Positions 17,232-56,749 of a DNA stretch of 64,000 nt are shown here, piece by piece (the first letter of the stretch is position 1; each line of letters opens with the position of its first letter). The stretch is taken from positions 17,149 through 81,148 of the forward strand of contig NIVC01002435.1 of assembly GCA_002269645.1 (NCBI GenBank), written 5' to 3'. The DNA is from Macrostomum lignano. Lineage: Eukaryota. A program made the position numbers and the translations under genes. The notes below the pieces were generated by a model. The model saw only the letters and a program-made list of their open reading frames with translations, was not told the origin of the DNA and ran no database searches.

Positions 17232-17277
<46 letters not shown>

Positions 17278-17343: not shown

Positions 17344-17413
<70 letters not shown>

Positions 17414-20400
17414 AGTAGTAGTAGTAGTGGTAGTAGTAGTTGTAGTAGCAGTAGTAGTAGTAGCAGTAGTAGTTGTAGCAGTAGTAGTAGTAGTAGTAGT
17501 AGTAGCAGTAGTGGTAGTAGTAGCAGTAGTGGTAGTAGTAGCAGTAGTAGTAGTAGTAGTAGTAGCAGTAGTAGCAGTAGTAGAAGTAGTATTAGTAGTA
17601 GTATTAGTGGTAGTAGTAGCAGTAGTAGCAGTAGTAGAAGTAGTATTAGTAGTAGTATTAGTGGTAGTAGTAGTTGTAGTAGTGTTATAATGTATCACTT
17701 ATTTATGATGTAATCTAGCTCAGGTCTCTCTAATAATTTTATCCGTAATTAATTGTCCCCTTCAATTTTAACTCCAAGTCCCACCTGCGGCTTTGTTACA
17801 GCCATTCAAAACCGTGGAAGGCGTGGAGCTCCTCGACGCACCACCCTGCGTGTCGATGCCCTTCAGCACCAAGGTGAGTCCAACTGAGGCCATTATTCAT
17901 GGCCTCTGCTTCTGTGTCGATCGCACTTTTACAAGCTAGTAGAATTTGTGCCAAACCCTTGCAGCACTGCCCTGTGGTGTGGAGCACCGTTGACGCCGTG
18001 CTCATTTCCAGCTACCACGCCATCCTGGGCATCCCCTACCTGACCGGCTGCACCGATTTTGCTGGCAGAATTTTTGCCACCGAGCCGTCTATCGAGTTTG
18101 GCAGGTGATTTTGCTTCTGCTGTCAATTCGTGACCCGTGTCTGAGGTGTTCTCAAGTCTGCACTTAGTTATTGCTCTGCTTGTTAACTTGTTTTTATAGG
18201 CAGATTCTGGAGGATTTGGCCAACTCGGTGGACCAGCTGCCTCACTGCGGCAAATTGGAGGACGTGGTGAAGCGACTCAGGTAGGCTATGAGCATATTTC
18301 TAATCGGATATGAGGCTTTAGAGCAATTGGCATTTTAACTGACTGCCAGTGAGATGGTATACCGACAGGCAGATATTGACATGGCTTGGCTACTGATACG
18401 GCTGACAGACATGTTGGCAGCTACTGACAAAGGAACTGAGAGCTTACTGTAACTGTCAGAACCCATCTGACACAGAATAGTATCTGTCAGAACCCATCTG
18501 ACCAGAAGAGTATCTGTCAGAACCCATCTGACACAGAAGAGTATCTGTCAGAACCCATCTGACACAGAAGAGTATCTGTCAGAACCCATCTGACACAGAA
18601 GAGTATCTGTCAGAACCCATCTGACACAGAAGAGTATCTGTCAGAAGCCATCTGACACAGAAGAGTATCTGTCAGAACCCATCTGACACAGAAGAGTATC
18701 TGTCAGAAGCCATCTGACACAGAAGAGTATCTGTCAGAACCCATCTGACACAGAAGAGTATCTGTCAGAACCCATCTGACGCAGAAGAGTATCTGTCAGA
18801 ACCCATCTGACACAGAGGAGTATCTGTCAGAACCCATCTGACACAGAAGAGTATCTGTCAGAACCCATCTGACGCAGAAGAGTATCTGTCAGAACCCATC
18901 TGACACAGAATAGTATCTGTCAGAACCCATCTGACACAGAAGAGTATCTGTCAGAACCCATCTGACACAGAAGAGTATCTGTCAGAACCCATCTGACACA
19001 GAAGAGTATCTGTCAGAACCCATCTGACACAGAAGAGTATCTGTCAGAACCCATCTGACACAGAAGAGTATCTGTCAGAACCCATCTGACACAGAAGAGT
19101 ATCTGTCAGAACCCATCTGACACAGAAGAGTATCTGTCAGAACCCATCTGACACAGAAGAGTACATGTATCTGTCAGAACCCATCGCCCCATCCTCCCTA
19201 GAGAGGCGGGCCACCCGCTGGCGGACCAGGCCGAGAACTGGATGCCGGTGTTCACGGCAGCTCAGGTGCAGTCAGCATTCGACAGCGTCCAGCGAGTATC
19301 GTTCAACCAGCGAGTCCAGCTGCTCAACGACCTGCTGCTCACCCCAGTCAGCTCGGGCTTCTGCATCGGCGGCTGCAACTGGCTGATCGAGAGCGACTTC
19401 CACAGAATGGCCTACATGTCCGCCTCTTCGCAGTGGACCTGCCACCCCCTGCCCATGAGCTGGCAGGCTCTGGTCGGCTGCGACCTGCTGCTGTTTAACG
19501 GGGCGTGCCTGCTGCCGGGCCAGACTCCCGACCGATCAGTGGAGGACATCTGCTCAGCTCTAGTGACCGTGCTCAGCCAGGTGAGTCCTGCTTTTGGCTG
19601 TGATGCTGAAATTGGCTGCTCAGACTGATTGGGGCTGCTCATTGACTGATTGGGGCTGCTCATGAATGATTGAGGCTGCCATGACTGATTGGGGCTGCTC
19701 ATTGACTGATTGGGGCTGCTCATGAATGATTGAGGCTGCTCAGACTGATTGGGGCTGCTCATTGACTGATTGGGGCTGCTCATGAATGATTGAGGCTGCC
19801 ATGACTGATTGGGGCTGCTCATTGACTGATTGGGGCTGCTCATGACTGATTGGGGCTGCTCATGACTGATTGGGGCTGCTCATTGACTGATTGGGGCTGC
19901 TCATGAATGATTGAGGCTGCCATGACTGATTGGGGCTGCTCATGACTGATTGGGGCTGCTCATGACTGATTGGGGCTGCTCATGACTGATTGGGGCTGCT
20001 CATGACTGATTGGGGCTGCTCATGACTGATTGGGGCTGCTCATGACTGTTTGGGGCTGCTCATGACTGATTGGGGCTGCTTATGACTGATTGGGGCTGCT
20101 TATGACTGATTGGGGCTGCTCATGACTGATTGGGGCTGCTCATGACTGATTGGGGCTGCTCATGACTGATTGGGGCTACTCATGAATGATTGGGGCTGGA
20201 ACTGACTGCTCATGATGCTTAGGCCCCTCACCCTAAATACTAACTGTCGCATCCCCATCCCGCTCGCGTCGGCACTGCAGGGCGGCAGCGCTCTGTTTCC
20301 CTGCCGGCCGTGCGGCGTGCTGTTCGACCTGCTGGAGTCCATCTCCAACCACCTGGACGCCAAGGGCATGCGCCGCTACCCCATGTACCTGGTCTCTGCC

Positions 20401-23400
20401 CGGGCCAAGAACAGCCTCAGCTTTGCGGACATCTGCGGCGAGTGGCTGTCAGCTGAGCGGCAGAAGCGGCTGTACACGGCTGATGTGCCGTTCGGGCACG
20501 CCGAAGTGAGACCCGCTTAGGGGCTGGCCTCTCTTCCGTTGCCTAATTAGGTCTATCTCTCCCAGTCTCCTCTCTTCCCCATCCCTTCCAATCTTATATT
20601 TTCCCATGCCTTCCAGTCCCCTCTCTTCCCCATCTCCTCCAGTCTCCTCTCTTACCCATCTCTTCCCATCTTTCAGTTCCCCTTTCACCTTATCTATCAA
20701 AATTTTTGCCCTCTACATCACCCAGTAAGTCTCTATGGACCTTAATATTTTATTCTCTACTCTCCTTCCCAGTCTCTAATGTTTTCCCATCCCTCTTGTT
20801 TTTACTTTATGTCTGCCTCGTGACTCACGCCTTTGCCCCACCTCCCCCCTCACCCAGATGCTTCAGCAGAACCAGCTCCAGCAGTTTTCCAGCCTGGGCA
20901 GCGACTTCGGCCGGCAGTGCAGCCAGCCCTGCATCGTGTTCGCCACCGACCCCTGCCTGCGCCTTGGCGAGGCCGTTCACCTGGCCGCCGCCTGGGGCCG
21001 CGACCGGCCCAACGCCCTGTTCCTCACCGATCCGCAGTTCGCCGACGTGCAGACCCTGGCGCCGTTCCAGCCGCTGGCGATGCCCGTGAGGATTCCCTGA
21101 CTACAGCTGCTTAATGTACAGTGTGTGCCCTCTGCCCCGCACTGTGCACTGCATACTATCACTTATCCCCAGTTTTATCGCAGTTTTATATCAGGGCCCG
21201 AGTGCCGAAAAATACCCTGGCTTACACTGTATATCCTCAGATGTCAGGGTCCCAGTGCCCCAATACCCTGGCTTATTCCTCAGATTTCGGGGTCCCAGTG
21301 CCCCAATGCCCTGGCTTATACCCTCAGATGTCAGGCCCCAGTGCCCCAATACCCTGGCGTATATCCTCAGATTTCGGGGTCCCAGTGCCCCAATGCCCTG
21401 GCTTATACCCTCAGATGTCAGGGTCCCAGTGCCCCAATGCCCTGGCTTATACCCTCAGATGTCAGGGTCCCAGTGCCCCAATACCCTGGCTTATACCCTC
21501 AGATGTCAGGGTCCCAGTGCCCCAATGCCCTGGCTTATACCCTCAGATGTCAGGGTCCCAGTGCCCCAATACCCTGGCTTATACCCTCAGATGTCAGGGT
21601 CCCAGTGCCCCAATGCCCTGGCTTATATCCTCAGATGTCAGGGTCCCAGTGCCCCAATACCCTGGCTTATACCCTCAGATGTCAGGGTCCCAGTGCCCCA
21701 ATGCCCTGGCTTATATCCTCAGATGTCAGGGTCCCAGTGCCCCAATACCCTGGCTTATTCCTCAGATGTCAGGGTCCCAGTGCCCGAATGCCCTGGCTTA
21801 TATCCTCAGATGTCAGGCCCCAGTGCCCCAATACCCTGGCTTATATCCTCAGATGTCAGGCCCCAGTGCCCCAATACCCTGGCTTATATCCTCAGATGTC
21901 AGGGTCCCAGTGCCCCAATACCCTGGCTTATACCCTCAGATGTCAGGGTCCCAGTGCCCCAATGCCCTGGCTTATACCCTCAGATGTCAGGGTCCCAGTG
22001 CCCCAATGCCCTGGCTTATACCCTCAGATGTCAGGGTCCCAGTGCCCCAATACCCTGGCTTATATCCTCAGATGTCAGGGTCCCAGTGCCCCAATGCCCT
22101 GGCTTATATCCTCAGATTTCAGGGTCCCAGTGCCTCAATGCCCTGGCTTATACCCTCAGATGTCAGGGTCCCAGTGCCCCAATGCCCTGGCTTATACCCT
22201 CAGATGTCAGGGTCCCAGTGCCCCAATACCCTGGCTTATATCCTCAGATGCTAATGCATCGCTAATTAGGAAGCTCCCTGTGCCCCTGACTTATATCCTC
22301 AGACGTTCACAGACCCTGGAGGTCATGCATCGCACAGAAATCCCCGGGGTCAATTTTCGGTCACGAGGCTAAGCCCCAAATTCAGGATCGTGTACTGGCC
22401 GTTTTGAACTGCAGGTTCACCGCTTCACTATGGACATGCGGATGCAGCCGTCTCAGGCTGCTGATGTGCTCAGCCTGCTCAGGTGCGGTCGCCTGGTGAT
22501 GCCGGAGGCCTATCGCCGCCTCGACTGCCATGGCGGCTGTCCCGTGAGCTACTCGCAGTACCTGTCAGTCATGCAGTTCCCTCTGGATTCGTCCGACCAG
22601 CTACTGGAGCTGAGCCCCGCTCTGGCCAGGACTGTCCGGCCTGTCCGGGTCGGAGACAGGCAGCTCGCACTGCTGGTATGTTGAGATACTGATTGTGACA
22701 CTGGTTGTGGCACTGGTTGTGGCACTGGTTGTGGCACTAACTGTTGCACTGACTATGACACTGGTTGTGATACTGACTGTGGCACTGGTTGTGGCACTGG
22801 TTGTGGCACTGGTTGTGGCACTGGTTGTGGCACTGGTTGTGGCACTGGTTGTGGCACTGGTTGTGGCACTGGTTGTGGTACTGACTGTGACACTGGTTGT
22901 GGCACTGGTTGTGGCACTGGTTGTGGCACTGGTTGTGGCACTGGTTGTGGTACTGACTGTGGCACTGGTTGTGGCACTGGTTGTGGCACTGGTTGTGGCA
23001 CTGGTTGTGGCACTGGTTGTGGCACTGGTTGTGGCACTGGTTGTGGCACTGTGGTCCATTAACTGTGGTACTTATTGTGGCACTGGTTGCGGCACTGATT
23101 GTAACTTTCCTCCTGCTGCTAGGAGGGCGAGGTGACCATGGGTCGCAGCGGTCGGCGCCGTCTGGAGCCGCTCTCCGAGGCGGCCAAGTCGTCCGGCTCC
23201 ACCGGCGGGGCTGTCGGCTTCGGCAGCGGCAGCGAGCTGAAGCCCCTGCTGGCCGCGGTGGAGAGCTCCCAGACGGCCAAGCCGCTGCTGACTGGCCAGC
23301 TGCGGCCGGAGGAGCTGGTGCGCCAGCTGCGCGCCAGGAACTTCCCCAGCGCCAAGCACGAGCTGGCAGAGGACGGCTCCTGGAGCATCTTCCTGGAGGT

Positions 23401-23518
23401 CGGGCACCAGGAGGCGCTGATCACGGGGTCGGCCGTGGCCACGCATGTCTACTGCGATGACGAGAAAATCCGGCTGGTTGTGCGCGAGTCGCTGCTGGCC
23501 TGTCTGGTGCTGGTTTGA
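16132..23518 (+). CDS. INTS9: Integrator complex subunit 9, about 665 aa. Exons 16132-16140, 16312-16518, 17802-17873, 17965-18104, 18200-18280, 19202-19580, 20281-20505, 20858-21085, 22415-22675, 23123-23518
   Basis: Colinear similarity to remembered INTS9: LLLDCPLD, STVDAVLISSYH..PYLT..ATEP, PVSSGFCIGGCNWLIES, FPCRPCGVLFDLLE, QPCIVF, LAPFQPLAM, KPLLTGQL, THVYCDDE.IR. Exons are phase-consistent and sum to 1998 nt. Confidence 0.93.
16676..17684. repeat. About 1-kb (TAG)n/(CAG)-interrupted trinucleotide microsatellite in INTS9 intron 2
   Basis: Continuous tagtagtag/cagtag run; source of the poly-V/S/T/L/Y pseudo-ORFs. Confidence 0.97.
18452..19184. repeat. 31-bp minisatellite, about 23 copies, INTS9 intron 5
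   Basis: Unit gtatctgtcagaacccatctgacacagaaga, with an internal inverted tgtcaga/tctgaca; the last unit merges into the 3' splice site at 19201. Confidence 0.95.
19623..20192. repeat. 20-bp minisatellite, about 28 copies, INTS9 intron 6
   Basis: Unit catgactgattggggctgct with a higher-order 60-bp variant pattern at the 5' end. Confidence 0.95.
21185..22250. repeat. 44-bp minisatellite, about 24 copies, INTS9 intron 8
   Basis: Unit ctcagatgtcagggtcccagtgccccaat(a/g)ccctggcttata(t/c)c. Confidence 0.95.
22694..23098. repeat. 12-bp minisatellite, INTS9 intron 9
   Basis: Unit ggttgtggcact, about 33 copies. Confidence 0.95.
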
Positions 23519-23673
23519 CACTACTGATAGTAGCTTGAATTTGGCGGCGCTAGAAATTAAACAAGTGCATTTGTTAATTTGAAATATATTTGTCAGATAT
23601 GCATTACTGATATGTATTATTGTTTCTTATTTATTGCTTGTAAAGGTATTTTTATATGTTGTAATTAGTGGAA

Positions 23674-24470
23674 ATAGATAAATAAGACAGCGGCACTGTG
23701 CAGTCATCAGTGTACATAGATAGATAAGACAGCGGCACTGTGCAGTCATCAGTGTACATAGATAGATAAGACAGCGGCACTGTGCAGTCATCAGTGTACA
23801 TAGATAGAAAAGACAGCGGCACTGTGCAGTCATCAGTGTACATAGATAGATAAGACAGCGGCACTGTGCAGTCATCAGTGTACATAGATAGATAAGACAG
23901 CGGCACTGTGCAGTCATCAGTGTACATAGATAGATAAGACAGCGGCACTGTGCAGTCATCAGTGTACATAGATAGAAAAGACAGCGGCACTGTGCAGTCA
24001 TCAGTGTACATAGATAAGACAGCGGCACTGTGCAGTCATCAGTGTACATAGATAGAAAAGACAGCGGCACTGTGCAGTCATCAGTGTACATAGATAGATA
24101 AGACAGCGGCACTGTGCAGTCATCAGTGTACATAGATAGATAAGACAGCGGCACTGTGCAGTCATCAGTGTACATAGATAGATAAGACAGCGGCACTGTG
24201 CAGTCATCAGTGTACATAGATAGATAAGACAGCGGCACTGTGCAGTCATCAGTGTACATAGATAGATAAGACAGCGGCACTGTGCAGTCATCAGTGTACA
24301 TAGATAGATAAGACAGCGGCACTGTGCAGTCATCAGTGTACATAGATAGATAAGACAGCGGCACTGTGCAGTCATCAGTGTACATAGATAGATAAGACAG
24401 CGGCACTGTGCAGTCATCAGTGTACATAGATAGATAAGACAGCGGCATTGTGCAGTCATCAGTGTACATA
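23674..24470. repeat. 42-bp minisatellite, about 19 copies, between INTS9 and SNX4
   Basis: Unit gacagcggcactgtgcagtcatcagtgtacatagatagataa. Confidence 0.95.
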
Positions 24471-24528
24471 CAGGTCGATAGTTGGGTCAGCATTAATTTT
24501 ACAAGCCTGGAACTTCCACAACCGCAGC

Positions 24529-27500
24529 ATGGCTGAGCCGGCAGCTCCCGAAGATCCGCAGCAGCAGCTGCAGGCCCAGTCTGAGCAGCAGCAGCCGGTG
24601 CAGTTGTCGCTGCCGAAGCCCAGCGGCCGCTACCTTCGAGTCCGAATCGCTGACCAATAGCGCTCGCCTGACGACCGAGTCGCCTACGTGGTGGAGACGC
24701 GCGTGCTCGACCAGGAGGCGACGCCGCAGGAGCTGCGCGACCTGCTGGGCAGCCACGCCCTGCAGACGTGCCGCTACTACTCGGACTTCGATCTGCTGCG
24801 CGGCTTCCTGGAGCTGAAATATCCCGACTGCCTGATCCCGCCGCTGCCGGACAAGCTTTCCTCCTACGCGCCCTGGAAGATTGCGGGACAGAAGTTTGAC
24901 CAGGTCTGCTGACTCTGCTGGTTTGCATTCTTGTCCCTAATCCACCTTTCAGAATCTCTGATAATCCGCCTTTCAGAATCTCCGATAATCCACCTTTGAG
25001 AATCTCCGATAATCCACCTTTGAGAATCTCTGATAATCCACCTTTGAGAATCTCTGATAATCCACCTTTGACATTATTCGCCAGGCTCAAACAGCGCAGT
25101 CCATTCAAGCCAACCCCATCTTCCGTCCCGCAGGACTTCCTCGACAACCGCCGCTTCGGCCTGGAGCTGTTCATCAACCGGGTGCTGTGCCATCGCCGCC
25201 TGAGCTTGTGCCAGCAGGTGGTGTCCTTCCTTCGTCACGACTCTGAATGGCGCCTGCGCGTCTTCACGCCGGCCATTGGCCAGCAGCTGGACGCCGCAAT
25301 TTCCGCGCGAAGCGCCGCATTTCGCTTGCGCTCGCCGCTGCCCGCCGTAGCGACGATGCGGACCAACGCGGCCGCGGTTCGGGCGGCTGTTCAGGTGAAC
25401 CTGTGGGACATCTGGGGGCTTATCAGTGAGCTGACTGGCTTATCAGTGAGCTGACTGGCTTATCAGTGAGCTGACTGGCTTATCAGTGAGCTGACTGGCT
25501 TATCAGTGAGCTGACTGGCTTATCAGTGAGCTGACTGGCTTATCAGTGAGCTGACTGGCTTATCAGTGAGCTGACTGGCTTATCAGAGAGCTGACTGGCT
25601 TATCAGTGAGCTGACTGGCTTATCAGTGAGCTGACTGGCTTATCAGTGAGCTGACTGGCTTATCAGTGAGCTGACTGGCTTATCAGTGAGCTGACTGGCT
25701 TATCAGTGAGCTGACTGGCTTATCAGTGAGCTGACTGGCTTATCAGAGAGCTGACTGGCTTATCAGTGAGCTGACTGGCTTATCAGTGAGCTGACTGGCT
25801 TATCAGTGAGCTGACTGGCTTATCAGTGAGCTGACTGGCTTATCAGTGAGCTGACTGGCTTATCAGAGAGCTGACTGGCTTATCAGTGAGCTGACTGGCT
25901 TATCAGAGAGCTGACTGGCTTATCAGTGAGCTGACTGGCTTATCAGAGAGCTGACTGGCTTATCAGTGAGCTGACTGGCTTATCAGTGGAGGATCAGGAT
26001 CAATCAAGCAGGCTTAGCTCAGAGCCAAAGTCCCCATCCCGCATGCCCTCAGGCGGTGGCCAAGGCCTACGAGCAGCTGGTGGCCCGGCACTACCGCATT
26101 CACCGGCTCCATTCAACCCTCGGCGGCATCCTCAGCGACTGGTGCGGCCTGGAGGAGGACCCGGCATTTGCTGACGCCCTGCAGACGGCCGGCCACTACA
26201 TGGACGTCTATGCTAGCGGAGCCGATTCCGCGGTTGGCGAAGACGACGAGCTGCTGAATCGGCTGCGCGAGGCCGCCGGCTTCTGCGACTCCGTGGCTGG
26301 CCTCTGCCGGCGCCTGGAGCTCAAGGTGAGCCGCTGCTGGTCTTCTTATTAGCTTTTATGTGGTTGAACTGGCATGGGGATTCCGCCTGAAAAATTGCCC
26401 AAGAATCGCCACTCCAAAACCAGATGAGAATTCTCCTGTCCCACCAGATGAGAATTCTCCTGTCCCACCAGATGAGAATTCCCTTGCCCACCCAGGTCAG
26501 AATTCCCCTGCCTACCCAGATAGGAATGTCCCCTGCTAACTCAGGTGAGAATTTCCCTGCCCATCCTGGTGAGAATTTCCCTGCCCATCCTGGTGAGAAT
26601 TTCCCTGCCCATCCTGGTGATAATTCCCCTGCCCATCCTGGTGAGAATTTCCCTGCCCATCCTGGTGAGAATTTCCCTGCCCATCCTGGTGATAATTCCC
26701 CTGCCCATCCTGGTGAGAATTTCCCTGCCCATCCTGGTGAGAATTTCCCTGCCCATCCTGGTGAGAATTTCCCTGCCCATCCTGGTGAGAATTTCCCTGC
26801 CCAGCCTGGTAAGAATTCCCCTGCCCACCCAGGTGAGAATTCCCCTGCCCACCCAGGTGAGAATTCCCCTGCCCACCCAGGTGAGAATTCCCCTGCCCAC
26901 CCAGGTGAGAATTCTCCTGCCCACCCAGGTGAGAATTCCCCTGCCCACCCAGGTGAGAATTCCCCTGCCCACCCAGGTGAGAATTCCCCTGCCCACCCAG
27001 GTGAGAATTCTCCTGCCCACCCAGGTGAGAATTCCCCTGCCCACCCAGGTGAGAATTCCCCTGCCAACTCAGGTGAGAATTCCCCTGCCAACTCAAGTGA
27101 GAATTCCCCTGCCAACTCAGGTGAGAATTCTCCTGCCAACTCAGGTGAGAATTCCCCTGCCCATCCTGGTGAGAATTTCCCTGCCCACCCTGGTAAGAAT
27201 TCCCCTGCCCACCCAGGTGAGAATTCCCCTGCCCACCCAGGTGAGAATTCCCCTGCCAACTCAGGTGAGAATTCTCCTGCCAACTCAGGTGAGAATTCCC
27301 CTGCCAACTCAGGTGAGAATTCCCCTGCCAACTCAGGTGAGAATTCCCCTGCCCATCCTGGTGAGAATTTCCCTGCCCACCCTGGTAAGAATTCCCCTGC
27401 CCACCCAGGTGAGAATCGTCTTCCCCAACTTATAGCACGATGTAAGTGAACAGTGACTTTTACAATTTAATCTATTTTTAGCGCGGGGCTACACGGGTTG

Positions 27501-28491
27501 TAGCCTAGTGGTTAGAGCGCCGGAGTCACGACTTGAAGGTCGAGAGTTCGTTTCCTCACCCACTTGTCATGCCGCAGCCTTGTACTCACTTGTTGTTGTT
27601 AAATGGGGTGCCTAGCAGTGCGGGGTGCTCGCTCACTGTACTCACTTATTGTACTCTGCACCCCCCGGCTTACCCCTCCCCTGTTATGCCTTTTATGGCA
27701 ACGTGGCCGCATATGATTGGTTGAGGCCTGAAGGCCCAAATAGATATAGGCGCTCTCGCCCTACTTGGAGGGCCAAGCGTTTTCGCACTGCCAAAATCGA
27801 TACTGACTCCTGAGTCATTATACCACTTGGAACAATTTGAGTCCTTAAGCAAGACACTTGTAACTCTGCATGGCTTCAGTTCACCCAGCTGTAAAATGGG
27901 TGCCAGCATTAGCTGGGGTAATTGAGGGTGTGTGTGGCGACCCCCCAGTCCTTGACTGAACAGCCGTACGCAGCCTTCAGATGCGCCGCGCAATAGCTGC
28001 GGCTGAGCTGTCGGTTGCACAACTGTCCATTTGGGCAGGTGTGATCAATGATTATTATCGTGCTATCAACAGTAGTCTGTATCGCAGGCATATTCTGCAT
28101 TTGTTTATCGCAGGTTCTCAAAGCCGAGCAGCTGGAAGACGCCATCGCGGCCAAGCGGGACGAGAAGCGCCGGGTGGAGACGGACAGCTACGGCTTGTCA
28201 CTGCGCGGCCTCCGCACGCGCCTGTTTGGCGCCCAGGACGCGGAGCAGAAGCGAGCGGCCCTGTATCAGCTGGAGACGGACATCTCCCAGCTGGAGGCCG
28301 GCCTGGCCACCGCCCGCCGGAGCCTGGACGCCGGCAGCGCCTCCGTGGACTCGGAGATGGCCGACTTTCAGGCGCAGCGCCGCGTTGACCTCGGCCGCCT
28401 GGTGGCGCTGCTGTGCGAAATGCGCGCCGAGAAGCTGCACCGCGCCTGCCGCATCTGGGCGCACAGCCGGGACACGTTTGCCCGCGTGTGA
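24529..28491 (+). CDS. SNX4: Sorting nexin 4 (PX-BAR), about 428 codons with an in-frame TAG at 24658-24660. Exons 24529-24903, 25134-25394, 26053-26325, 28114-28491
   Basis: PX motifs AYVVETR, RYYSDFDLLR, LIPPLPDK and RRFGLELFINRV; BAR motifs ALQTAGHYMDVYAS, SLRGLRTRLFG and IWAHSRDTFARV*, which match remembered SNX4 (GLQSAGHHMDVYAS, SLKGMTTKLFG, VWTNAKECFSKM*). Functional status is uncertain because of the TAG. Confidence 0.88.
24937..25070. repeat. 24-bp minisatellite, 5-6 copies, SNX4 intron 1
   Basis: Unit taatccacctttgagaatctctga. Confidence 0.9.
25420..25988. repeat. 20-bp minisatellite, about 28 copies, SNX4 intron 2
   Basis: Unit tatcagtgagctgactggct (variant tatcagagag). Confidence 0.95.
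26420..27420. repeat. 24-bp minisatellite, about 41 copies, SNX4 intron 3
   Basis: Unit ggtgagaattcccctgcccaccca, with variants arranged in blocks. Confidence 0.95.
27495..28060 (+). mobile_element. tRNA-derived, CORE-type SINE-like element in SNX4 intron 3 (3' end uncertain)
   Basis: A box TAGCCTAGTGG (27501-27511); B-box-like agttcgtttcc (27545-27555); CORE-like block ccttaagcaagacactt...ttcagttcacccagctgtaaaatggg (about 27844-27900), resembling the MIR CORE ccttgggcaagtcactt...ctgtaaaatggg. Confidence 0.55.
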
Positions 28492-28877
28492 GAGGGCTGG
28501 GGCTGCTAAGCCTGCTTTAAAGTCTGTGGGATCATCACGACTTTACTAAAATAAGTTTTATGACTTGAAGGGTCCTGTTCGGTCGTGAACTGTTGCAAAA
28601 TTCTCACCTGTATATTTAGCGCGAGGCACGTGATTGGCCTTTGCTTGCAGACCAGATGCTTTAATTGTATAATATTGCAGTGCGATCTTGTTATCTACCA
28701 ATGTCAAGTTCTGCGCGTGGTTTTGCGCTACAGGCTTTCTGTAATTCAATTTCTGAATGCGTTATGATAATGATTTAAACTTCTCTAAATCAATGTCAGC
28801 ATTGTGTACGAATTTCTCGAATAACCTCATCATTGCATTGTAAATTTATCTGTGTATAATGATCACGTTGTTCAGGT

Positions 28878-29312
28878 CCGCAGTTGCTGGGCCAGCCACC
28901 CAGATCCTCAGTTGCAGGGGCCAGCCTCCCAGATCCTCGTTGCTAAGCCAGCCTCCCAGATCCTCAGTTGCTATGCTAGCCTCCCAGATCCTCAGTTGCT
29001 GGGCCAGCCTCCCAGATCCTCAGTTGCTATGCCAGCCTCTCAGATCCGCAGTTGCTATGCTAGCCTCCCAGATCCTCGGTTACTTTGCCAGCCTCCCAGA
29101 GTGTCAGTTGCTAAGCCAGCCTCCCAGATCCTCAGTTGCAGGGGCCAGCCTCCCAGATCCTCGGTTACTTTGCCAGCCTTCCAGAGTGTCAGTTGCTAAG
29201 CCAGCCTCCCAGATCCTCAGTTGCAGGGGCCAGCCTCCCAGATCCTCGGTTACTTTGCCAGCCTCCCAGAGTGTCAGTTGCTAAGCCAGCCTCCCAGATC
29301 CTCAGTTGCTAG
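28878..29312. repeat. Degenerate minisatellite of about 27-28 bp, downstream of SNX4
   Basis: Recurring agcctcccagatcctcagttgc core with higher-order blocks. Confidence 0.9.
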
Positions 29313-37654: not shown

Positions 37655-40600
37655 ATGGCGACCAAAGAAATGTTCGAAGAGCTGGAATACTACAAAAACT
37701 ACCAGCTGGATGAAGGCGAGATCGACCTGCGCTCCTACCTGCTCGACGTGGAGCACCTGGAGGAGAAGATCCGGTCGGGAGAGTACCCCACCCCTGCCGT
37801 GCTCTCCACCCGGCAGCGAGAGAAAGGACAGCCGCCCAGAGACCCGAGCGCTACGAACGAGCCGCCGTTCCCGCCGCGCCGCCGCAAGGAGGAGATTTTC
37901 GATGCCGCCGCGTACACAGAGAAGGACGCGTACGTCAGGTCGCTGCTGCCGGAGCCTGCAGAGACGGAGGAGAACTTTGCGGCGCGGCTGTTCCAGCAGT
38001 GCAGCTCGAATCTGGACAAGGTCCGAGCTGCCTTCGTCTTTGTGAGCTCCGCCAAGGTGGATGAGCTGGCAGAGGCGAAGAGTGCTTCGAAGCTGTACAG
38101 GCTGGCTCGTGGACTTCGAGTTAACGAGAAGTTCAGTGATTTATTCAAAAAGCTCATGAAGTAAGTTGGCTTTTCGCTTTCAAATCTGATCTTTGATCTA
38201 ATGAATTTGTTTAGCAACCTTCCGATCTGTTTTTGGTATCTAAAGCGAAAAGACGATTTAAATAAGCAGCATGCAGACATCTCAACTACATGATTTTGGG
38301 ATCAAAATTTCCAATGCCTCTAGTTCAAAAGCTTTCTCTTCCTTCTCATATGAACAATAAAACTGTCATCAACGCGCTATATTCTCTAAACCTTAAGCTT
38401 AAGGCCGGCCTTACCTGCTTCAGTCTCGCTGGAGTTCCTATCAAGTGCATCACCGGCCACAAAAAAGGAGCCAGGTTCAAGATCGGCCACGAGGTCACTC
38501 AGTGGACTGCCTGCTGGTTCGCTTGTTACGTTGAAGGAGAGTGGCGCTTTGTTGACCCACACTGGGGTTCCAGAAGTGTTGTGGGTTACAGTCGCGGAGA
38601 TTTCGCTAAAATCGACGATGCCGGAAACGTGCACAGTGCGCAGAAGTCCGACGGGCAAACCAAATATTCTGCTAGGGAGTTTTACTTCTTGCCTGATCCA
38701 GACCAGCTGATCCTTTCGCACTGCCCGAAAGACCCGATTGACGACGAGTGGCAACTCCTGGTCTGCCCACTCAGTGTGGCTCAGTTTGTGAGGATGCCCC
38801 GCTATTTTTCTGGAAGTCCTGAGTTGGCGGAAGACTTCATTACAAAAGTGAAATCCGTCAGTCATCCGTGGAATGTGATCGTGGCAGATCCAGGAAAGCT
38901 TGAATTATTTTTCCACGAATGTGACTGTGAAATCAAGATTTCATCCACCGTCAGCATTCACACCAAGAACGTTACCGAGGACAACCAAGCCGTGATCAAG
39001 GCTACCATCGATCGAATTGGATCCTTATCGAGACCTGCGAAAATGGGAAAAGGGATATTCAAGTTCATATTCGTGCCGCCATGCTCAGGAATGTTTTTGC
39101 TAACGATTTCTCTGCAAATGAAAGCTCCCAGAAAAAGATATTTGGCTGATTTTGTCTCGTACGTCATCCACTGCCCACGTGCGGCGGAAATCCCGGTCCC
39201 TCAAGCCAGAGGCGTTGACCAGCCGTCCTATTTTGGTCCCGGCATCGATCTGGAAAACGCGGGCCTATATACCGATGCCCCTGGAGAAATAAAGGCTAAA
39301 GGTGGCGAGAACTTACTGACTATTGAATGTCCAGACCGGATAAACTTTGTTCCTAGGTGCGAGCTGCTGGATGCTACTAATGAGAGCTTACCGACGAGAA
39401 ATTTACTTATCTGGTCCGTTGGTTCAAAGGTTTTCATATTGCTTCTATCGCCCGACTCCGGCTCGTTCGCTTTGGTGATTTACGATGACGATAGGCCGGT
39501 ATGTCAGTTTCTCATCGACTCTCCGTCAGAGTTTCGGGACGCCAATGAATTCCCGATGCCCGACTTCGACAAGCTGGGCGGTCTGGGCTTCCTTGACAGA
39601 GAGCTGAGCAAAGAACTCCAGCCCCAAAGCCACACCAACCCACACGTTCTCTGCGATGAGTCGACGCTGAATCTGTCGTTCAGGATCAGCGAAATCCAAG
39701 CCGAGATCCAAGCGGAGCTGCTGCACATCGTCTCAGATGGTCGGGGCGAGGTCTCGCGGGGCTACTCTCTTGTCAGCTCCCCATCCAGAGAGCAGTCGAA
39801 AGTGAGCATGAGATTTCCCATCGCTGGTCACTACGTTTTGAGAGTGAACGGTAGACGCAACAGGTCGGAGTCTTGGCGGCCCTTCTGCAACTACTTCATC
39901 CGGGCTGTGGGCGAGCTCAACGGTGAAGCAGAGCAGTTTCCTCAGGCGATGGAAGCCTGGAGCAGTAGAAACCAGCTAGTGCTGCCAACGCAGGGAAGTT
40001 TGCCGCTAAACGAGACAATCCTTTTTGCGGTTCGAGTGAGCGACCCGAGCGTGAACTCCGTAGCACTCGTCACTTCAACTAATTATCGCATTCGAATGCG
40101 CAAGAGCACGAGTGGTCTGTGGAAGGGCAAGCTCACGAGCACTAAAAACCAGGCCGGACAACCTCTCAGAATTGAAAGTGAGACGGCGTCAAATTCAAAC
40201 TCGTGCGGAACTCTTCTCAATTACCAGTTCGAGTCGAACGAGGACAAGAAGATCAGGAACATCAATATCGAGGCTGCAGCTGACCTGAACCAGCGTCGTA
40301 GGAGGAGCGAAAATCTGCGCCAAAGAAAGCAGGAAAACCATGAGCGGGTGGAGAAGGCCTTGGAGCTACTGCCCACCGATCCTGGCGAGCCGGACAGTCA
40401 AACGGTGAGTTGCGCTCATCTAATCCGGCTCAACAACTAGCTCAGAGTGATCCGGCTGTTTGCGCTTATGCCATTCGATATTGGAGTGCCTGTTTCTTGT
40501 TTTCCAGGAACAGAAGAGACTGGAGAGACAGGAACAGCTGGAGAGCAGCTTGCAAGAGTTGAGCCACCCTGACAACAAAAGCACATTCAAGCTGCAGCAT

Positions 40601-43407: not shown

Positions 43408-46400
43408 ATGGCGACCAAAGAAATGTTCGAAGAGCTGGAATACTACAAAAACTACCAGCTGGATGAAGGCGAGATCGACCTGCGCTCCTACCTGCTCGAC
43501 GTGGAGCACCTGGAGGAGAAGATCCGGTCGGGAGAGTACCCCACCCCTGCCGTGCTCTCCACCCGGCAGCGAGAGAAAGGACAGCCGCCCAGAGACCCGA
43601 GCGCTACGAACGAGCCGCCGTTCCCGCCGCGCCGCCGCAAGGAGGAGATTTTCGATGCCGCCGCGTACACAGAGAAGGACGCGTACGTCAGGTCGCTGCT
43701 GCCGGAGCCTGCAGAGACGGAGGAGAGCTTTGCGGCGCGGCTGTTCGAGCAGTGCAGCTCGAATCTGGACAAGGTCCGGGCTGCCTTCGTCTTCGTGAGC
43801 TCCGCCAAGGTGGACCAGCTGACAGAGGCGGAGAGCGCTTCGGAGCTGTACAGGCTGGCTCAGAAGCTGCGTACAGTTAACTCTTTCGTCGATTTGTTTG
43901 AGAAACTCCTGAAGTAAGTGGCTTTTAAATGCTTTTATTATCCCAAACGATAAACCATAGGCGTATATACATGTTTTATAAGACATTTTTGTATCATCTG
44001 CACTAATGTGTCTTCATGAAGCTGTAAAGGGAGCGGTGTGGTGTGCTGAACCACGGGGCGCCATTGGAGTTTTAAGACGTCAGCATTGGTGGCGCCAAAG
44101 TATCTGGATAGTTGCTGGGGTACTGCTATAAAGCCAAGTCAGCGGTAAGCGGGAATGGCCATTATTTTCGCGGCCTGATTCGGCTGGCTACGTCTGTGTT
44201 GAGCAGGGTCAAACAAGTCAATTATGCCAGCTCTACAGTGATTGACCAGATGTGTCTGACTGCGGTGGATGGATGGTGGATTTTGCCCATTTGTTTAATG
44301 AAGCTTAGAGGTTTAATGCCTCAAGAGATCTGTAACCAATGGTCAAGTGTTCCGTTAGTCTCCGAATTTACGAGCTACAACAGCAAAACTACCATCTGAG
44401 TTAGTGTTATGGTAAGCCTTCGAGGGACGCATTGCTTCCTCAAGCAGTTCGTTAAGTCCTTGTGTGTACTGACGAAAATCTCATCTGACGATAAGGCGTT
44501 AGGAAAATTCCCTTTTAAAGTGTAGTGGTAAAATAGCAGATTTTATTTATAAATTTTTTGTCTTACGTGCACTTTCTATAGTTCACGAATGTTTCTGTGG
44601 ATTTCAATTACAGCTGTTTCGAAAGTGCTGCAATCAAAAATTACACTATGTATTCTCTTCCTCTCGCAATGCAGGCTTGGACAGGTCCCATATAAACGCA
44701 TCGAAGGTTACAAAAAGGTGGACAGAGTCGGCTATGAGCCCATAAATAGAGACTTTTGGTTTGCCTGCTATGTTGAAGGTGAGTGGCGGTTCGTGGACCC
44801 CAGGCGAGGCTCCGTCGGTATTTTCGGATTCAGCCGCGGAGACTTCCAGGAAATTAGCAACGATGGAAGTGTGAAGGACGCCGAAAAGTCCGAGGGCAAA
44901 ACTGTTTATGATACCAGAGAGTTTTTCTTCTTGACTGATCCCGACAAGCTCATTCAAACTCATTGCCCGCGTGAGGCTTTTCACATCGACTGGCAGCTCC
45001 TGGTGCGCCCGCTCAGCGTCACTGAGTTCAAAAGGATGCCCAGGTTTTTCATCGGGTCTACGGAATCCATCTGCGAATTCATAAATAAACTGAAGCCACT
45101 CAGTCACCCGTGGGAGGTCATTGCGGCTGCTCCTGGTACTACAAAAATTGACTTTCTCAAAGAAGACGACAATATTCTGATCTCATCAAGTGTCGCAATT
45201 CACAAAAAGGACGTTAATGAAAAAAGCAAAACTGCTATTAAGAAAGAATTCGAAAGAAAGGGGAATGAGTGCTTATCAAAGCAGATAAATAAAAAGAATG
45301 GTCGAACTAGAATAAGATTCAAGCCTCCCTGTGCAGGAAAGTTTAAGTTTAACGTTCATCTGCAGCGGAGCGGCTCCAGCCCTAGACCGTTGCTATATGT
45401 CTCGTACGTCATCCACTGTCCAAAGGCTGCCAAAAAGAATCAACGGTTGCCTCAAGGCAAAAGCGAGCTTCCATACTTTGGCCCAGGCGAAGAGATGGAA
45501 AATGCCGGGCTCAACACAAGCGAGGAGGGAGAGATCTACGCAAGCAATGGAGAGCACCTGCTTACGATTACGCGCGTCGATCAGAGACGCCAAGTTCCCA
45601 GGTGTGAGCTGATGAGTGCAACAAACGAGCAGCTGCCGACAAGAAACGTGCTGGTCTGGACTGTCGATTCGAACATTTTCATCCTGTTCCTTTCGCCCGA
45701 CTCAGGCTCGTACGCCCTGGTGATGTATAACGGAGCAGTACCGGTGTGCCAGTTCCTGGTTGACGCTCCCTCTGAGTTCAGAGACGCTTCCGAGTTCCCG
45801 CCGCCCAATTTCAATGAGCTTGGCGGGCTGGGCTTCTTCAACAGCGATCTGAGCCACGCTGTTCAGCCAGAGAGTCACAGCGATCCCCATATTCTATGCG
45901 AAGAGTCGACGCTGAATCTGTCGTTCAGGATCAGCGAAATCCAAGCTGAGATCCAAGCGGAGCTGCTGCACATCGTCTCGGGTGGTCGGGGCGAGGTCTC
46001 GCAAGGCTACGCGCTTGTCAGCTCCCCATCCAGAGAGCAGTCGAACGTGAGCATGAGATTTCCCATCGCTGGTCACTATGTTGTGAGAGTGAACGGAAGA
46101 CGCAACAGGTCGGAGTCTTGGCGGCCCTTCAGCAACTACTTCATCCGGGCTGTGGGCGAGCTCAACGGTGAAGCAGAGCAGTTTCCTCAGGCGATGGAAG
46201 CCTGGAGCAGCAGAGATCAGGTGTTACTGCCAAGACAGAGCGTTCTTCCTGTAGAAGAAACGGTCCACTTTGCTCTCCGAATGAGCAACCCCAACGTGAA
46301 CTCGGTATCGCTTATTGTCAATGAATCAAAGGATACTCGAATCGAGCTGAAAAAGCATGAAAATGGCATGTGGAAAGGTTCAGTAAAGGCGCTTCAAAGT

Positions 46401-47499
46401 GCGTCCGGACAATCAGCTCGAGTCGTCAGCAGCGAGTCTTCAGGAAGCTCCAATGTGTGTGGAAATTTGTTAAACTACCGGTTCGAGTCCGCGGAGGACA
46501 CAAAAATTCGAAATTCTAACAGAAAATCAGCTTCGGAGCTGAACAAGCGACGAAAAATCAGCGAACGGCGGCGAAAGCGGAAGCAAGAAAACTTTGAGTT
46601 GGATGAGATGGCCATGGATCTGCTGCCTGAAGATCCGGGAGAGGAAACTGGGGTCAGTTAGTATTTAATTTTTTAATGGTTATTCGTTGACAACAGTCCA
46701 ATAGTCTTGGCACTGCTGCATTTAGTCTGTTGTGTATGCCGCATAAGCGAGTAGTAGAGACAGTGCAATTTAAAACTTTGAAGACTCTGCTGCATCCAAA
46801 TATTCAGTCTTACCGCCATCTGCTTACGTCTTCCAATCATTGACTGTACAGTCACCTGAATTTTTTCATTTACTCAGAACCAGAATCCGGACAAGACAGC
46901 TCAGCGGGAGCAAACGATGAGGTACTGCTTCAGAACACTGAGTGGGCCCGACTACATCATCGCCTCCGCAGATCAGCACAGGAGTGTTCAGGCTGCACTG
47001 CTTCTGCTAAATCATTGCGAACAGGAAACCCAGGTAACTTCATAAATATATTTTCAACTATTTGCTGCGTAGAAGACAGCAGAAGCAGCTTCAAGAAAAA
47101 TTATTGCAACCATCCACCGAAGGACTGGAGTCGATGTCGCGCCGTGATGAGGTGCATTCTCAGGGAGCAAATTCACCCGGATGTGGACCGAATTCACCCC
47201 AAAATCGCAGAGAAGTCGCTTTCCATTCTGGACAGTTTGCAAGAACTTCGATATAAGGAAACCCTTCAACGACCTGCAGAAACCAATCTCAGGAAGTGGG
47301 TAAGTTTGAAAAGGCATCGAATGAAAAATTCGCAGACACTTATCTGAAACTTCGCTTCGTTCTCTCCAAATTGCAGACAAGGGTACTGGCAAAGGAAGTT
47401 TTACCCAAGGATCCGAATGAAAAACATCCTGCTGCCTCTAGAGCGGATCAGGTGCGAATTATGGAAGTTGATTCCGAAATTATCGAGGCCTGGAAGTAA
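43408..47499 (+). CDS. Hillarin/KY-like protein, copy 2, about 979 aa. Exons 43408-43913, 44675-46652, 46878-47033, 47123-47299, 47377-47499
   Basis: Same motifs (FWFACYVEGEWRFVDPRRG, FFFLTDPDKLIQTHCP) and the same exon phases as copy 1 (2940 nt). Confidence 0.8.
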
Positions 47500-52503: not shown

Positions 52504-55500
52504 TCAAGAAGTGTTGGATGACCCGGTTTCCTTTTCCGAACTCGGCGATCCAGCGGCAATGCTATCGATTGAGCAAGGCCTCCCATACCAGTCCCGGACT
52601 GCATCCAGCAGCCAACCTCGCAGCACAGCCGTCCTATCGATAACCTTTTGAATTCTTTCTTTCAGTCGTCGTTTCAACTCGACATCATGGCAGTACAGCG
52701 CCGCTGTGACCAGCTCCTGGGCGTCTGCGTCCGCTCGCACAGCCACGTCTCTGATCCAGCCATGAGCTTCCTCGATGCCCACTTTCAGCTCAATTCGGAG
52801 ACACTGGAGAAGTGCGTCAAAGTTCACAGAAAAATTTGTGTAATAATTCTCCAGTTGAAAAATTACGCATTCAGACATCCGTCTGGAAATGAAGGAATAC
52901 GTTGGGCGCTGATGCAGTGTGAAGCAAAACTTCCAAGCCGAGTCGGAGTTACAGAGATGTTGCCAAACTAGCTCCGTCGCCGAGCTCGAGACTGGCTTCT
53001 CAGTCGGCCAAGAGAAACCTCGCCTAACTTTGTGCAATCTGCACCCGATGAGAATATCGGCTGCCGCATCCTGGAGGCCAAATTTCAGACACGCAAGGAC
53101 TCTCAGCGATTCGCGAGCGGTTCGAGCGCAATCGGGCAGTTTTCCTATCAAATCCAGGAGTCCCAGATGCGATTTGGAGCTGCAGTCGTAGTCAGACAGG
53201 AACATTAGCGCTTCGCGAACAACATCGTAGATCTCGTGGTACTCGATTTTATTTGACTTTGGCGATGGGTTTTGTGCATGCATGTATGGCAGCACAACAA
53301 ATGGATGAAAGTAGAACATGTCGCCATCGTTGATTGATCGCAGAGTGCTCATAAACTGTATTACTAGCTCGTCAAAGTTTTCTGTCAAGTGAGTCAGTGC
53401 TCTAGCAATGGTTTCAAGAAAAGCCTTCATCTCCTCTGCTGCTTTCGGTTCCACACCCTTCAGGTACAGAGCCGTGTCGCAGAGAAAGAAATGGTCTAAA
53501 ATTTTTCCTTCTCCGTTATTATGCCCGGCGTTTTTCTCAACTGAGTCCCGAAGAATCTTGAGCGACTTCTTTGTGAGGCTGATAAGATTTTCTGGCCGCC
53601 ATCGCTCGCGTGGTGTTGTCTCAAGCATTCGGAATGTGGTAGTCTTGACGTGGTATGCCTTCAGTCCTTGAATACGAGTATTGTAGGAATCTTTGCTGCT
53701 GATAACCTTCTTCACCAGATACTTGAGAATGATAAACAGCTGCCCTTGGACAGTGTTTAGACTTCTCAGAAGAAGCTTCTCCAGAAATGTTGTGCTGACT
53801 CGAAGCTGTCTTCCTGCCTGATTTTGAGGTGCTGCGTGCACCACATGGCAGTGTGTAGAGGCGAGCGCCTGTTCCAGGGACAGAAGCAGGGACTCTGGAA
53901 TTTCGGAGTCTACGACTCTGTCCGGCAGCAGCGGCGCAATCGGGGGTAGCAGCAGACCCGACGCGCGTCCACCAGGTCTACGGCGGGCTTCAACACGGAT
54001 CCCAACAGCGGTTCGGCAGGATTCGATGCTGTGGGATGGATTTAATTTACAGTTGCATCTCGTAATTGGGAAACAGAGTATAAAAGCTTTAGTATATGGG
54101 TATTTAAAGCAAGCCAATTACCGAAACCAGGGCAAAAAATGTGACCATTGGTGTACTCCACTTGTTCGTCTTCCACCAAATCGCATCGGCATACGCCCCT
54201 AATGTGGTAATCTCTTCCAGAGATAAGCCTCATCACATCAATGTCGGACTCAATGTCTGTCGTGCCATCCAGGGCGGACAGATTGTTGCCCCAGCTTTCG
54301 GAATAGCTTCCCACGACAAATACTTCATTGTCACGCAGGCGCCTTCGCAGAATATCCTGCAAAACGTCTGCGACCGCGGCTTGAGCTTTGGCTCGAGATT
54401 CCGTAAACCCGGACTGCGATAGGCGCCTGTGTAGAAGCACGCTGAGCTCATTTTCTTTTTGCAGCACCCTGAAATGCAACATTTTACTGCCTATAGTCTC
54501 AAATAATTCAAAACAATCTAGTAGAATAGTAAAAAAGTATAAATGAAAATATTAGCTTCTTCTTGTTGTTTCAATTCGAAACGACTTTAATTAGAGGTGA
54601 AATTACGGATTGCAACTGTTTAAAACAACTTTATGCTGGAGATCTCTTATAGTTAGCATTTAGCCATGCAGGGTAGCTTCGAGCGATCGTAAGCCAGATG
54701 TCTCATTGTCGCAATACTGGCTAATTTTCAATTTTGCAAATCACTTAATATATATTCCACACAGGACTAAAATGTTCTTACGCTTTTTCATCTGACGTCA
54801 AATCGTTGGAGTCAACTTGAGGTTGACTCGTGGGTGAATCTGGCATCCATTTCTCATCCGGTAAGTTGTTTTGTTGAGCCACCGCCACGGCACCTGAATT
54901 AGCGGCTTCTTGGCCACTTTGCTTGTCTTCGACTAATCGCACGAGAGTAGTACTTCTTGACCCTGCTGAAGACTGCTTTCGGCACCGGCTTCCATTAAGG
55001 ACTTGACCACCCTTTCGTGACCCTGTACAGCTGCAAAAACCAGTGGAGTTATTCCATTGGCCTGGGTCACATCAACGTCTGCTTGTGCATCGATTAATTC
55101 CGTCACCACCTCCGCACTTCCTTGGTACGAAGCCAAATGTAGAGGAGTTAATCCATCGGCTGACTTGATATCGACATTGGCTTGAGCTCTAATCAGCTGT
55201 TTTGTGACTCTTAACTCATTCACTTGAGCAGTAGCGTGCAAAGCTGACATCCAATTGCCTCCTATCAAGTCCACGTCAGCCGGAGCTTTGATGAGTAAAT
55301 CAACAGCTTTAGTGTGACCTTGATGCGAAGCGATGAACAATGGAGACTCACCGTCGTTTGACATTGTGTCAATGTCTGCTTGAGCTTTGATGAGAGAGTC
55401 TGCCACTCTGTCGTGCCCGTTTGCACAGGCAATAAACAGTGGCGTTGCGCCACTAGCTGTCTGGGTGTCCACATGGGCTCCTTCCCTTATGAGAAGATTT

Positions 55501-56749
55501 ACAACCTTTAGATGCCCTTGCTGAGCTGCAATAAAAAGAGGCGTAGCGCCCTCCCGTTGCTGAACGTTCAATTCAGCCTTAGCATCAACAAGAGCCTGAG
55601 CAATTTTGAAATGACCAATTTGGCAAGCGACGTACAGTGGTGATTCGTTGTCAACTTGCCTCAAGTTTACATCTGCTCTCGATTGGATGAGCAGACTCAC
55701 CACTTCACTATGTCCGCGGTGAGTGGCAGCTAGCATGCAGGAAACTCCAGAGTTGTCTTGGCTGTTAAAACATTTGCTTGGGCCTCAACGAGTGCTTTCA
55801 CAACTCTATGGTGACCCCGAAACGATGCAATATGAAGCGGTGAAGTACCTGTGCACTCTTGAGTATCGAAGTCCGCTAGCGCTTTTATTAACACATTCAA
55901 AACTTCGTGATGGCCATTTTGTGATGCAACGTAAGACGGCGACATGCCATTGTGCTTGGAAAGATTAACATCAGCGCTTGCAGCAACCAGAGCCTGTACA
56001 ACACGCCGATGTCCATTCTGAGATGCGAGATACAGTGGCGAGCAGCCTTTGGCATCTTGACAGCTCAAATTAATTTGAGCTGTCAAAAGTAGCTCCACAA
56101 CTTTCAAGTGACCCTCCTGCGATGCAATATAGAGAGGTGAAATTCCGACAAGATTAGCCACATTTGCGTTCGCTTCCGCCTTGACGAGCGCCCGGACGAC
56201 CTCGTGATGCTGGCCGAATGAAGCAGCGTGCAGCGGAGAAACAAGAACTTCCCTATTGATGCAACGGTCGATGTCAGCTTGAGCTTCGATGAGGAGTTGA
56301 ACGATTCCAATATGGCCTTCCTGCGACGCGATATACAGCGGTGATGCGTGAATGCCTTCAAATTTATTCACATCGGCTTGAGCTTTGATTAGCAAGTCTG
56401 CTAGGAAGTAATAACCATTCTGAGAAGCAAGGTACAAAGGTGTGCAGCCGTCTGAGTCCAATAAATCAATGTCAGCTTGAGCTTCAATCAGTCGTTTTAG
56501 AACTTCAAGCCTACCTATAATGCATGTGAGGTGCAAAGGTGAAAACTGCTCGCCTAGAACGGGTAATTCGACGTCAAGGTTGTTCCGAGCTTCCAGATAG
56601 CGGTCCACAACGGTAAGATTGCCTTCCAAGATCGACCGCATGAATTGCTCGTCCGTCGGATAGGGAACATCAGCCTCGGGTTGGTCAGGCTCAGAGGCAA
56701 TCATGAGAACAGTGGCTATCCATTTGATCACTTCTTGTATTAGCGACAT
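52504..56749 (-). CDS. Ankyrin-repeat (about 17) plus Mab-21/cGAS-like nucleotidyltransferase (cGLR) fusion, about 1,280 aa. Exons 54782-56749, 54122-54468, 52504-54028; three frameshifts in the assembled sequence
   Basis: 33-aa ANK repeats (SPLYIASQEGH). The linker ends ..DEK-GC|gtaag (phase 2) and matches acceptor tttcag|G-GTG. NTase motif VGSYSE..DIESDIDVM, third acid in VDLV, and Mab-21 motifs LRVSTTFLEKLLL, LKYLVK, LKAYHVKT and DHFF. Confidence 0.8.

Follow-up and report, generated by a model that had tools for sequence, protein, structure and literature searches.

A predicted three-exon ankyrin–cGAS-like gene of the flatworm Macrostomum lignano, interrupted by three frameshifts

Do the separate open stretches on the minus strand between positions 56749 and 52504 belong to one gene, and can that gene, as assembled, still make the protein that its parts suggest? 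The locus lies on contig NIVC01002435.1 of the Macrostomum lignano assembly GCA_002269645.1, in a stretch of 64,000 nucleotides (positions 17,149 to 81,148 of the contig), which we refer to as the window and to which all coordinates below apply. An original prediction, made from the DNA letters, had proposed that a long array of ankyrin (ANK) repeats is spliced here to a Mab-21/cGAS-like nucleotidyltransferase (NTase), and that the fusion is a candidate innate-immune sensor. Judged by its sequence and by comparison with its homologs, the locus is a single three-exon gene of a family that joins ankyrin arrays to cGAS-like receptors (cGLRs). As assembled, it is interrupted by three frameshifts, and we think it probable that this copy is a young, recently inactivated pseudogene.

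One gene from five open stretches

Five open stretches follow one another head to tail on the minus strand from 56749 to 52504: two ankyrin open reading frames (ORFs) of 339 and 267 residues, a linker, a fourth stretch that carries GSYSESWGNNLSALDGTTDIESDIDVM, and an ORF of 537 residues. Together, they encode an N-terminal cap, 16 ankyrin repeats, a linker, a cGAS/Mab-21-type NTase and a C-terminal domain, in this order, which gives a conceptual product of about 1280 residues. All six pieces of the locus are collinear with its homologs. The gene model comprises the following features, in the order of transcription:

55769-56749, minus strand: exon 1, segment A; start codon, short hydrophobic N-terminus, cap and ANK repeats 1-8; 327 residues; codon starts at 1 modulo 3
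54963-55766, minus strand: exon 1, segment B; ANK repeats 9-16; 268 residues; codon starts at 2 modulo 3
54782-54963, minus strand: exon 1, segment C; acidic linker ...SRSTTLVRLVEDKQSG...DLTSDEK; codon starts at 0 modulo 3; ends in a split codon (GC/)
54469-54781, minus strand: intron 1; 313 nucleotides, GTAAGA...TTTCAG, phase 2
54122-54468, minus strand: exon 2; 347 nucleotides, 115 whole codons; N-terminal helix and NTase core strands, with GSYSESWGN (GS) and SDIDVM (DxD)
54029-54121, minus strand: intron 2; 93 nucleotides, GTAATT...CCACAG, phase 1; splits ...CPGF-A-SNPA...
53943-54028, minus strand: exon 3, segment E; ASNPAEPLLGSVLKPAVDLVDARRVCCYP, with the third catalytic Asp; 64-68% identity to homologs
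53335-53943, minus strand: exon 3, segment F1; remainder of the cGAS-like domain, a helical C-lobe with the Mab-21_C region at about 53736-53428
52507-53334, minus strand: exon 3, segment F2; family-specific alpha/beta C-terminal domain, 276 residues
52504-52506, minus strand: stop codon TGA

The individual pieces are readily assigned. Segment A, which lies inside the ORF 55730-56749, matches the Pfam Ank/Ank_2 models with an E-value of 3e-50 and is 50% identical to the M. lignano protein P0039, while segment B matches Ank with an E-value of 3e-52 and shares 46-47% identity with P0032 and P0030. Exon 2 is 62% identical to P0028 and P0042.

The evidence that these pieces are spliced together comes from a comparison of introns, for which the proteins of two M. 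lignano paralogs were mapped to the genomic sequence of their own loci. P0001 (locus L001) and P0006 (L002) each have exactly two introns, at residues and in phases that match both introns of the gene described here, and in both of them exon 2 comprises 115 codons, as it does at this locus. The first of these introns had been predicted as a phase-2 donor at 54781, at the end of the linker, paired with an acceptor at 54469 that opens the NTase. This pairing is borne out: exon 1 ends at 54782, the donor GT occupies 54781-54780, the acceptor AG occupies 54470-54469, and exon 2 begins at 54468. The second predicted junction, between 54122 and 54028, has its equivalent in the same two paralogs. Because position, phase and exon-2 length agree in P0001 and P0006, we take the two introns to join the pieces as one spliced gene, for which there is thus good support from sequence comparison.

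Three frameshifts and the state of the locus

Splicing accounts for two of the five frame changes that three-frame translation and the frame switches in tblastn alignments reveal along the locus. The remaining three fall inside exons, and each amounts to a net -1 frameshift, so that no continuous open reading frame runs across the three exons, and the claim that the sequence reads as one gene has to be given up for the assembled DNA. The frameshifts are located as follows:

55733-55784, minus strand: frameshift 1, net -1; the only interval across which both ANK frames are open; leads from ANK ORF 1 to ANK ORF 2, inside repeat 8/9
54936-55071, minus strand: frameshift 2, net -1; ANK and linker frames both open across this interval; leads from ANK ORF 2 to the linker
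53942-53946, minus strand: frameshift 3, net -1; a C5 run inside exon 3, one base short of the family motif CCYPPIAP

At frameshift 1, two leftover nucleotides (55768-55767), in GTTTTAAC, stand between ...EAQANV and NSQDNSGVSCML..., and the register of the ankyrin repeats runs on across them. An intron is impossible here, as the sole GT..AG pair spans 10 nucleotides. Frameshift 2 probably sits at the GGG run 54963-54961; its exact site could not be fixed because the linker was taken to be non-conserved, the linker query used with BLAST having been mis-framed and hence uninformative on conservation. An intron of 29 nucleotides with GT..AG borders (54961-54933) would restore the frame there. We judge it unlikely, since it would fall far below the 93 and 313 nucleotides of the introns of this gene and since the M. 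lignano paralogs have no intron at this place. Frameshift 3 is defined most sharply by the homologs, which read KPAVD.V.A.RLCCYPPIAPL, whereas at the locus KPAVDLVDARRVCCYP is followed by PIAPLLPDR in the next frame. Base 53943 belongs both to the last codon of segment E and to the first of segment F, and an alignment of P0001 with tblastn switches frame between 53937 and 53922. As the conserved motif is contiguous, an intron can be ruled out here as well.

The last frameshift falls just after the third catalytic Asp and hence in the catalytic core. The catalytic signature had been described as intact, and this holds for the residues themselves, since GS, DxD and the third Asp are all present; it does not hold for their frame, as the Asp of VDLV is out of frame with the 537-residue ORF. 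With this and the two other frameshifts, the locus as assembled cannot make the fusion protein.

Are these frameshifts real? Our appraisal rests on the assembled sequence. We used the neighbourhood as an internal reference: two neighbouring tandem genes, with about 5.2 kb of coding sequence, each align over two exons to their homolog and show zero frameshifts, although they contain more homopolymer runs of at least four bases than the ANK–cGLR gene (71 vs 45). If errors struck all runs at a uniform rate, all three would end up in this one gene with a probability of about 0.06. Because the neighbours have more such runs and no frameshift, a pseudogene is favoured over an assembly error and is likely the better explanation. 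If it is a pseudogene, it should be a young one, since none of its pieces contains an in-frame stop codon and since only 2 of the 35 columns that are conserved to at least 90% in the family deviate (G to S in SEGWGN and P to Q in AAPPG), which equals the median of intact family members.

Several points weigh against this reading and speak for a gene that is intact and functional in the animal, with three consensus errors introduced at short homopolymers. All three shifts are net -1; two coincide with homopolymer runs (C5 and T4/A2) and the third probably with a G3 run, and net -1 shifts at homopolymers are a signature of long-read consensus error. The locus would moreover be hard to polish, given its many paralogs and its repetitive ankyrin DNA, and paralog reads of such a multi-copy family could degrade polishing here and nowhere else in the neighbourhood. 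The same observations that make the putative inactivation young, namely the lack of premature stops and of decay at conserved positions, fit a functional gene equally, as does the presence of every catalytic residue. On the other side, a uniform error rate high enough to cause three errors in 4 kb should have struck the neighbours too. We therefore regard assembly error as possible, if on the unlikely side, and continue with the view that this copy is probably a young pseudogene.

The encoded domains

The fold of the NTase was assessed on the homolog P0002 (598 residues, in an alignment of 20 sequences), which is about 50% identical to the window and to which the pieces of the locus align collinearly. 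Its AlphaFold2 model has a mean predicted local distance difference test (pLDDT) score of 79 and a predicted template modelling (pTM) score of 0.80. When this model was compared with the PDB by Foldseek, the top 50 matches were all cGAS, MB21D2 or MAB21L1, with 4k97_A as the best (E 2.9e-8, template modelling score 0.57 on the target). A profile of 16 Mab-21-only segments, searched against PDB sequences, likewise retrieved cGAS-like receptor 1 (8gjy, E 4.4e-9) and mouse or human cGAS (about 1e-7), in each case over the C-lobe; the same search with full-length homologs was swamped by ankyrin matches and was uninformative. The Pfam profile PF20266 (Mab-21_C) matches the 537-residue ORF with an E-value of 1.9e-4 and 21.9 bits, under its cut-off of 24.1, and reaches 25-32 bits in the homologs P0009, P0018, P0049 and P0065.

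The model places the active-site residues of P0002 on predicted strands 37-41, 63-77 and 119-128, in an order that fits a Pol-beta-type NTase. G41, S42, D63, D65 and D121 are invariant among 16 members that are 31-63% identical, and the window retains all of them, in GSYSESWGN and SDIDVM of exon 2 and in KPAVDLV of exon 3. The family is thus predicted to adopt the bilobed cGAS/Mab-21 fold, with a Pol-beta-like NTase core and a helical C-lobe. The original prediction had named the failure to model as such a fold with aligned acidic residues as grounds for its rejection; for this homolog, the modelled fold is cGAS-like and the residues are in place. The proposed order of ankyrin array, linker and cGAS-like NTase is upheld and matches that of the homologs.

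Does this fold imply an enzyme? A non-enzymatic scaffold role has been proposed for MAB21L1/2, and if the present family used its fold in the same way, even its intact members would make no second messenger. In line with this, the Pfam profile PF03281 (Mab-21 NTase) finds no match in the NTase exon of the window or in eight homologs, so that the family assignment rests on the fold and profile evidence described above, and the 20-residue loop that separates GS from DxD, in which a Trp is invariant, is unusually long and poorly modelled. Furthermore, five M. lignano family members (numbers 89-93) were included in a screen of 140 proteins for activity (Table S3 of Li et al., 2023, 10.1101/2023.02.22.529553). 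They carry the motif GS.AE.WGN...SD.D and were cloned from just before the NTase onward, without the ankyrin array, and the main text names none of them among the active enzymes; no activity is reported for them. These points count against a catalytic family. It would be hard, however, to explain without catalysis why G, S and three acidic residues are invariant among such divergent members, and Mab21L1-3 have no predicted functional active site (Li et al., 2023). We consider the scaffold explanation improbable and treat the intact members as putative enzymes.

Their charge may bear on what these would sense. The predicted isoelectric point (pI) of the NTase exon is 5.0, that of the Mab-21 part and C-terminal domain together is 6.7, and those of the ankyrin parts are 5.1-5.2, while cGLRs that sense nucleic acids are associated with a high pI (Li et al., 2023). 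The near-neutral to acidic values predicted here are weak evidence against the sensing of DNA or RNA.

Several His and Cys residues are invariant or nearly so in the family (H76, C83, H97 and C129 of P0002, corresponding to 54330-54180 and 54000-53940 on the minus strand of the window). They lie on either side of the DxD strand and after the third Asp (YH..G.C.C ... NGH ... CCYP) and could form a structural metal site, placed elsewhere than the zinc thumb of cGAS.

The ankyrin array (56749-54963) matches PF00023 and PF12796 with E-values of 1e-49 to 1e-52 over its two ORFs. By hand, we count 16 canonical repeats of 33 residues and an N-terminal capping repeat, in agreement with the predicted number of about 17. 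The variability profile of the repeats is typical, with a conserved framework and with variable positions 8-9 and 12 of helix 1 and a variable loop. Ahead of the array, the predicted N-terminus (56749-56690, minus strand) comprises a short hydrophobic stretch, IKWIATVLMIAS. The M. lignano protein P0003 has a similar one that includes a Cys pair, LFSAVAACCLRVF. Such stretches may be signals for membrane association or lipidation.

At the other end, the cGAS-like domain is followed by a family-conserved C-terminal domain of about 275 residues (53334-52507). For the sequence of the window, aligned with the family, its AlphaFold2 model reaches a pLDDT of 80.7 and a pTM of 0.81, and a Foldseek search of this model against the PDB returned nothing significant. 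Its best match, the N-terminal domain of TRIF, has an E-value of 0.24, which we treat as noise. Being conserved and confidently modelled, with no fold relative in the PDB, this domain is the most useful by-product of our analysis.

The family and its relation to known systems

In a search of a database of 5.8 billion proteins, the C-terminal 537-residue ORF retrieved 25 proteins with 35-61% identity (best E 4e-132), many of them with ankyrin repeats; those with a species name are from M. lignano. An exhaustive HMMER scan returned 78 clusters (at 50% identity) with E-values below 1e-10 (best 5.7e-232), many of them 1100-1400 residues long. Every cluster that we looked up is from M. lignano, with ANK+Mab-21 proteins of 890-1400 residues, and the weak tail of the matches comes from other lophotrochozoans, such as Lingula and Mercenaria. 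In the searched databases, the family therefore appears as a large expansion in this flatworm. In the 64-kb window itself, tblastn with family proteins found no further copies.

The architecture, which had been thought possibly undescribed, turns out to be on record. In the survey of Li et al. (2023, 10.1101/2023.02.22.529553), 87% of the cGLRs are stand-alone enzymes, and a minor class is fused to TPR or ankyrin modules. M. lignano accessions of the PAA series with Ank_2 matches are listed in Table S2, and 'most' platyhelminths are said to have no cGLRs beyond Mab21-like proteins. A literature search on Macrostomum with Mab-21, cGAS or STING returned nothing specific beyond these tables. The ANK–cGLR architecture is thus catalogued and functionally uncharacterised, and we know of no such fusion with a known ligand or product.

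One might also read the locus as two adjoining units that are not spliced together: an ankyrin-only gene, which would run from 56749 to about 54934, and a separate gene for a Mab-21/cGLR protein, which would start at an ATG at 54482. This ATG is in frame with exon 2, and the databases contain several M. lignano proteins of 540-650 residues with a Mab-21 part alone, though many look like partial models. Such a reading is highly improbable. The linker frame enters a consensus GTAAGA donor in phase with the acceptor, an intron at the equivalent place joins ankyrin array and Mab-21 part in M. lignano paralogs, the ATG falls in the polypyrimidine tract and acceptor region, and both putative units would carry frameshifts anyway.

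Some M. lignano proteins have further domains. P0097 combines ankyrin repeats, a Mab-21 part, a second set of ankyrin repeats and a C-terminal caspase domain (E 3e-27), P0083 combines WSC, ankyrin, Mab-21 and RING domains, and P0026 carries a tandem pair of NTase signatures. Such models may reflect either genuine fusions or neighbouring genes merged in annotation; in the former case, the caspase and RING domains hint at an output in cell death or ubiquitin signalling.

Elsewhere in the window, we noted the following features:

37655-40440 and 43408-46661, plus strand: tandem duplicate of a two-exon gene (169 residues plus 716 or 690 residues), both copies intact, with a KY-like immunoglobulin domain (PF23265); the sole relative in the database, with 41% identity, is an M. 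lignano protein annotated as calponin-homology-domain-containing
16300-29300: G+C-rich block of 13 kb (50-57% G+C vs about 45% elsewhere), almost wholly made of micro- and minisatellite arrays; at least nine different arrays with periods of 3, 12, 20, 20, 24, 28/85, 31, 42 and 44 and with 15-335 copies each; the long 'ORFs' in this block are repeat artefacts
13800-14399, minus strand: remnant of a mariner/Tc1-type DDE transposase (Pfam Transposase_1 E 1e-5, DDE_3 E 3e-5)
542-4888, minus strand: exons of a class C G-protein-coupled receptor (7tm_3, E 1.4e-22 for the ORF 4295-4888); the gene probably extends past the start of the window

For the intact members of the family, the likely mechanism may be envisaged as follows. 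The NTase, with its invariant GS, DxD and third Asp, would make a nucleotide second messenger. The acidic ankyrin solenoid would bind a protein or another non-nucleic-acid ligand, or would hold the enzyme inactive, and the orphan C-terminal domain would add regulation or output, possibly by ligand binding or inhibition. On a bolder reading, macrostomid flatworms may have built a large lineage-specific family of receptors, in which not the binding of nucleic acid but a variable ankyrin array, together with a structurally novel C-terminal domain, controls a cGAS-like synthase. We offer this bolder reading as a speculative proposal that, on present evidence, is unlikely rather than probable. If true, it would amount to a pattern-recognition system whose ligands are proteins or other molecules than nucleic acids, in a phylum said to have mostly lost its cGLRs, and the copy described here, dying or mis-assembled, would belong to a family that evolves by birth and death. 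As a probable pseudogene, this locus itself adds little beyond an instance of gene turnover; the interest lies with the family, that is, with its putative gating by ankyrin repeats, its C-terminal domain and its expansion. Should the family work in this way, it would provide, in an experimentally tractable genus of flatworms, a cGAS-like enzyme that answers to a repeat-protein sensor rather than to DNA or RNA.

Among known systems, the closest are the other ANK+Mab-21 proteins of M. lignano, for instance PAA61028.1 (P0027, 1146 residues), PAA54193.1 (P0028, 1378 residues) and BOX15_Mlig031899g1 (P0001). They share with the locus the order of parts, the two intron positions and phases, the length of exon 2, 50-62% identity over the Mab-21 part, and the signatures GS[YF]SEGWGN..L.G.T...SDIDV and KPAVD.V...CCYPPIAP. 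Unlike them, this copy has three frameshifts, and the number of ankyrin repeats varies among the paralogs. More distant are the animal cGLRs described by Li et al. (2023), including the ankyrin-fused minority found, for example, in Stylophora pistillata. They have in common with the present family the fold, the GS/DxD/D residues, the alignment of the C-lobe to cGLR1 (8gjy) and cGAS and, in that minority, the ankyrin fusion, whereas the additional C-terminal domain of about 275 residues, the 20-residue loop between GS and DxD and the near-neutral to acidic pI set the family described here apart.

Vertebrate cGAS, the best structural match to the P0002 model, shares about 15% identity. The ankyrin array and the C-terminal domain are extra here, the basic N-terminus of cGAS has no counterpart in the family, and there is no evidence of a DNA-binding surface.

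For the ankyrin array, a parallel is offered by RNase L, an innate-immune enzyme in an OAS/cGAS-related pathway, whose N-terminal ankyrin array is its ligand-binding and activity-gating module. The sequence relationship would be limited to the ankyrin repeats, and we draw on RNase L as an analogy for mechanism only. In RNase L, the array senses a nucleotide signal and gates a nuclease; in the family described here, an ankyrin array is fused to what would be the synthase of such a signal.

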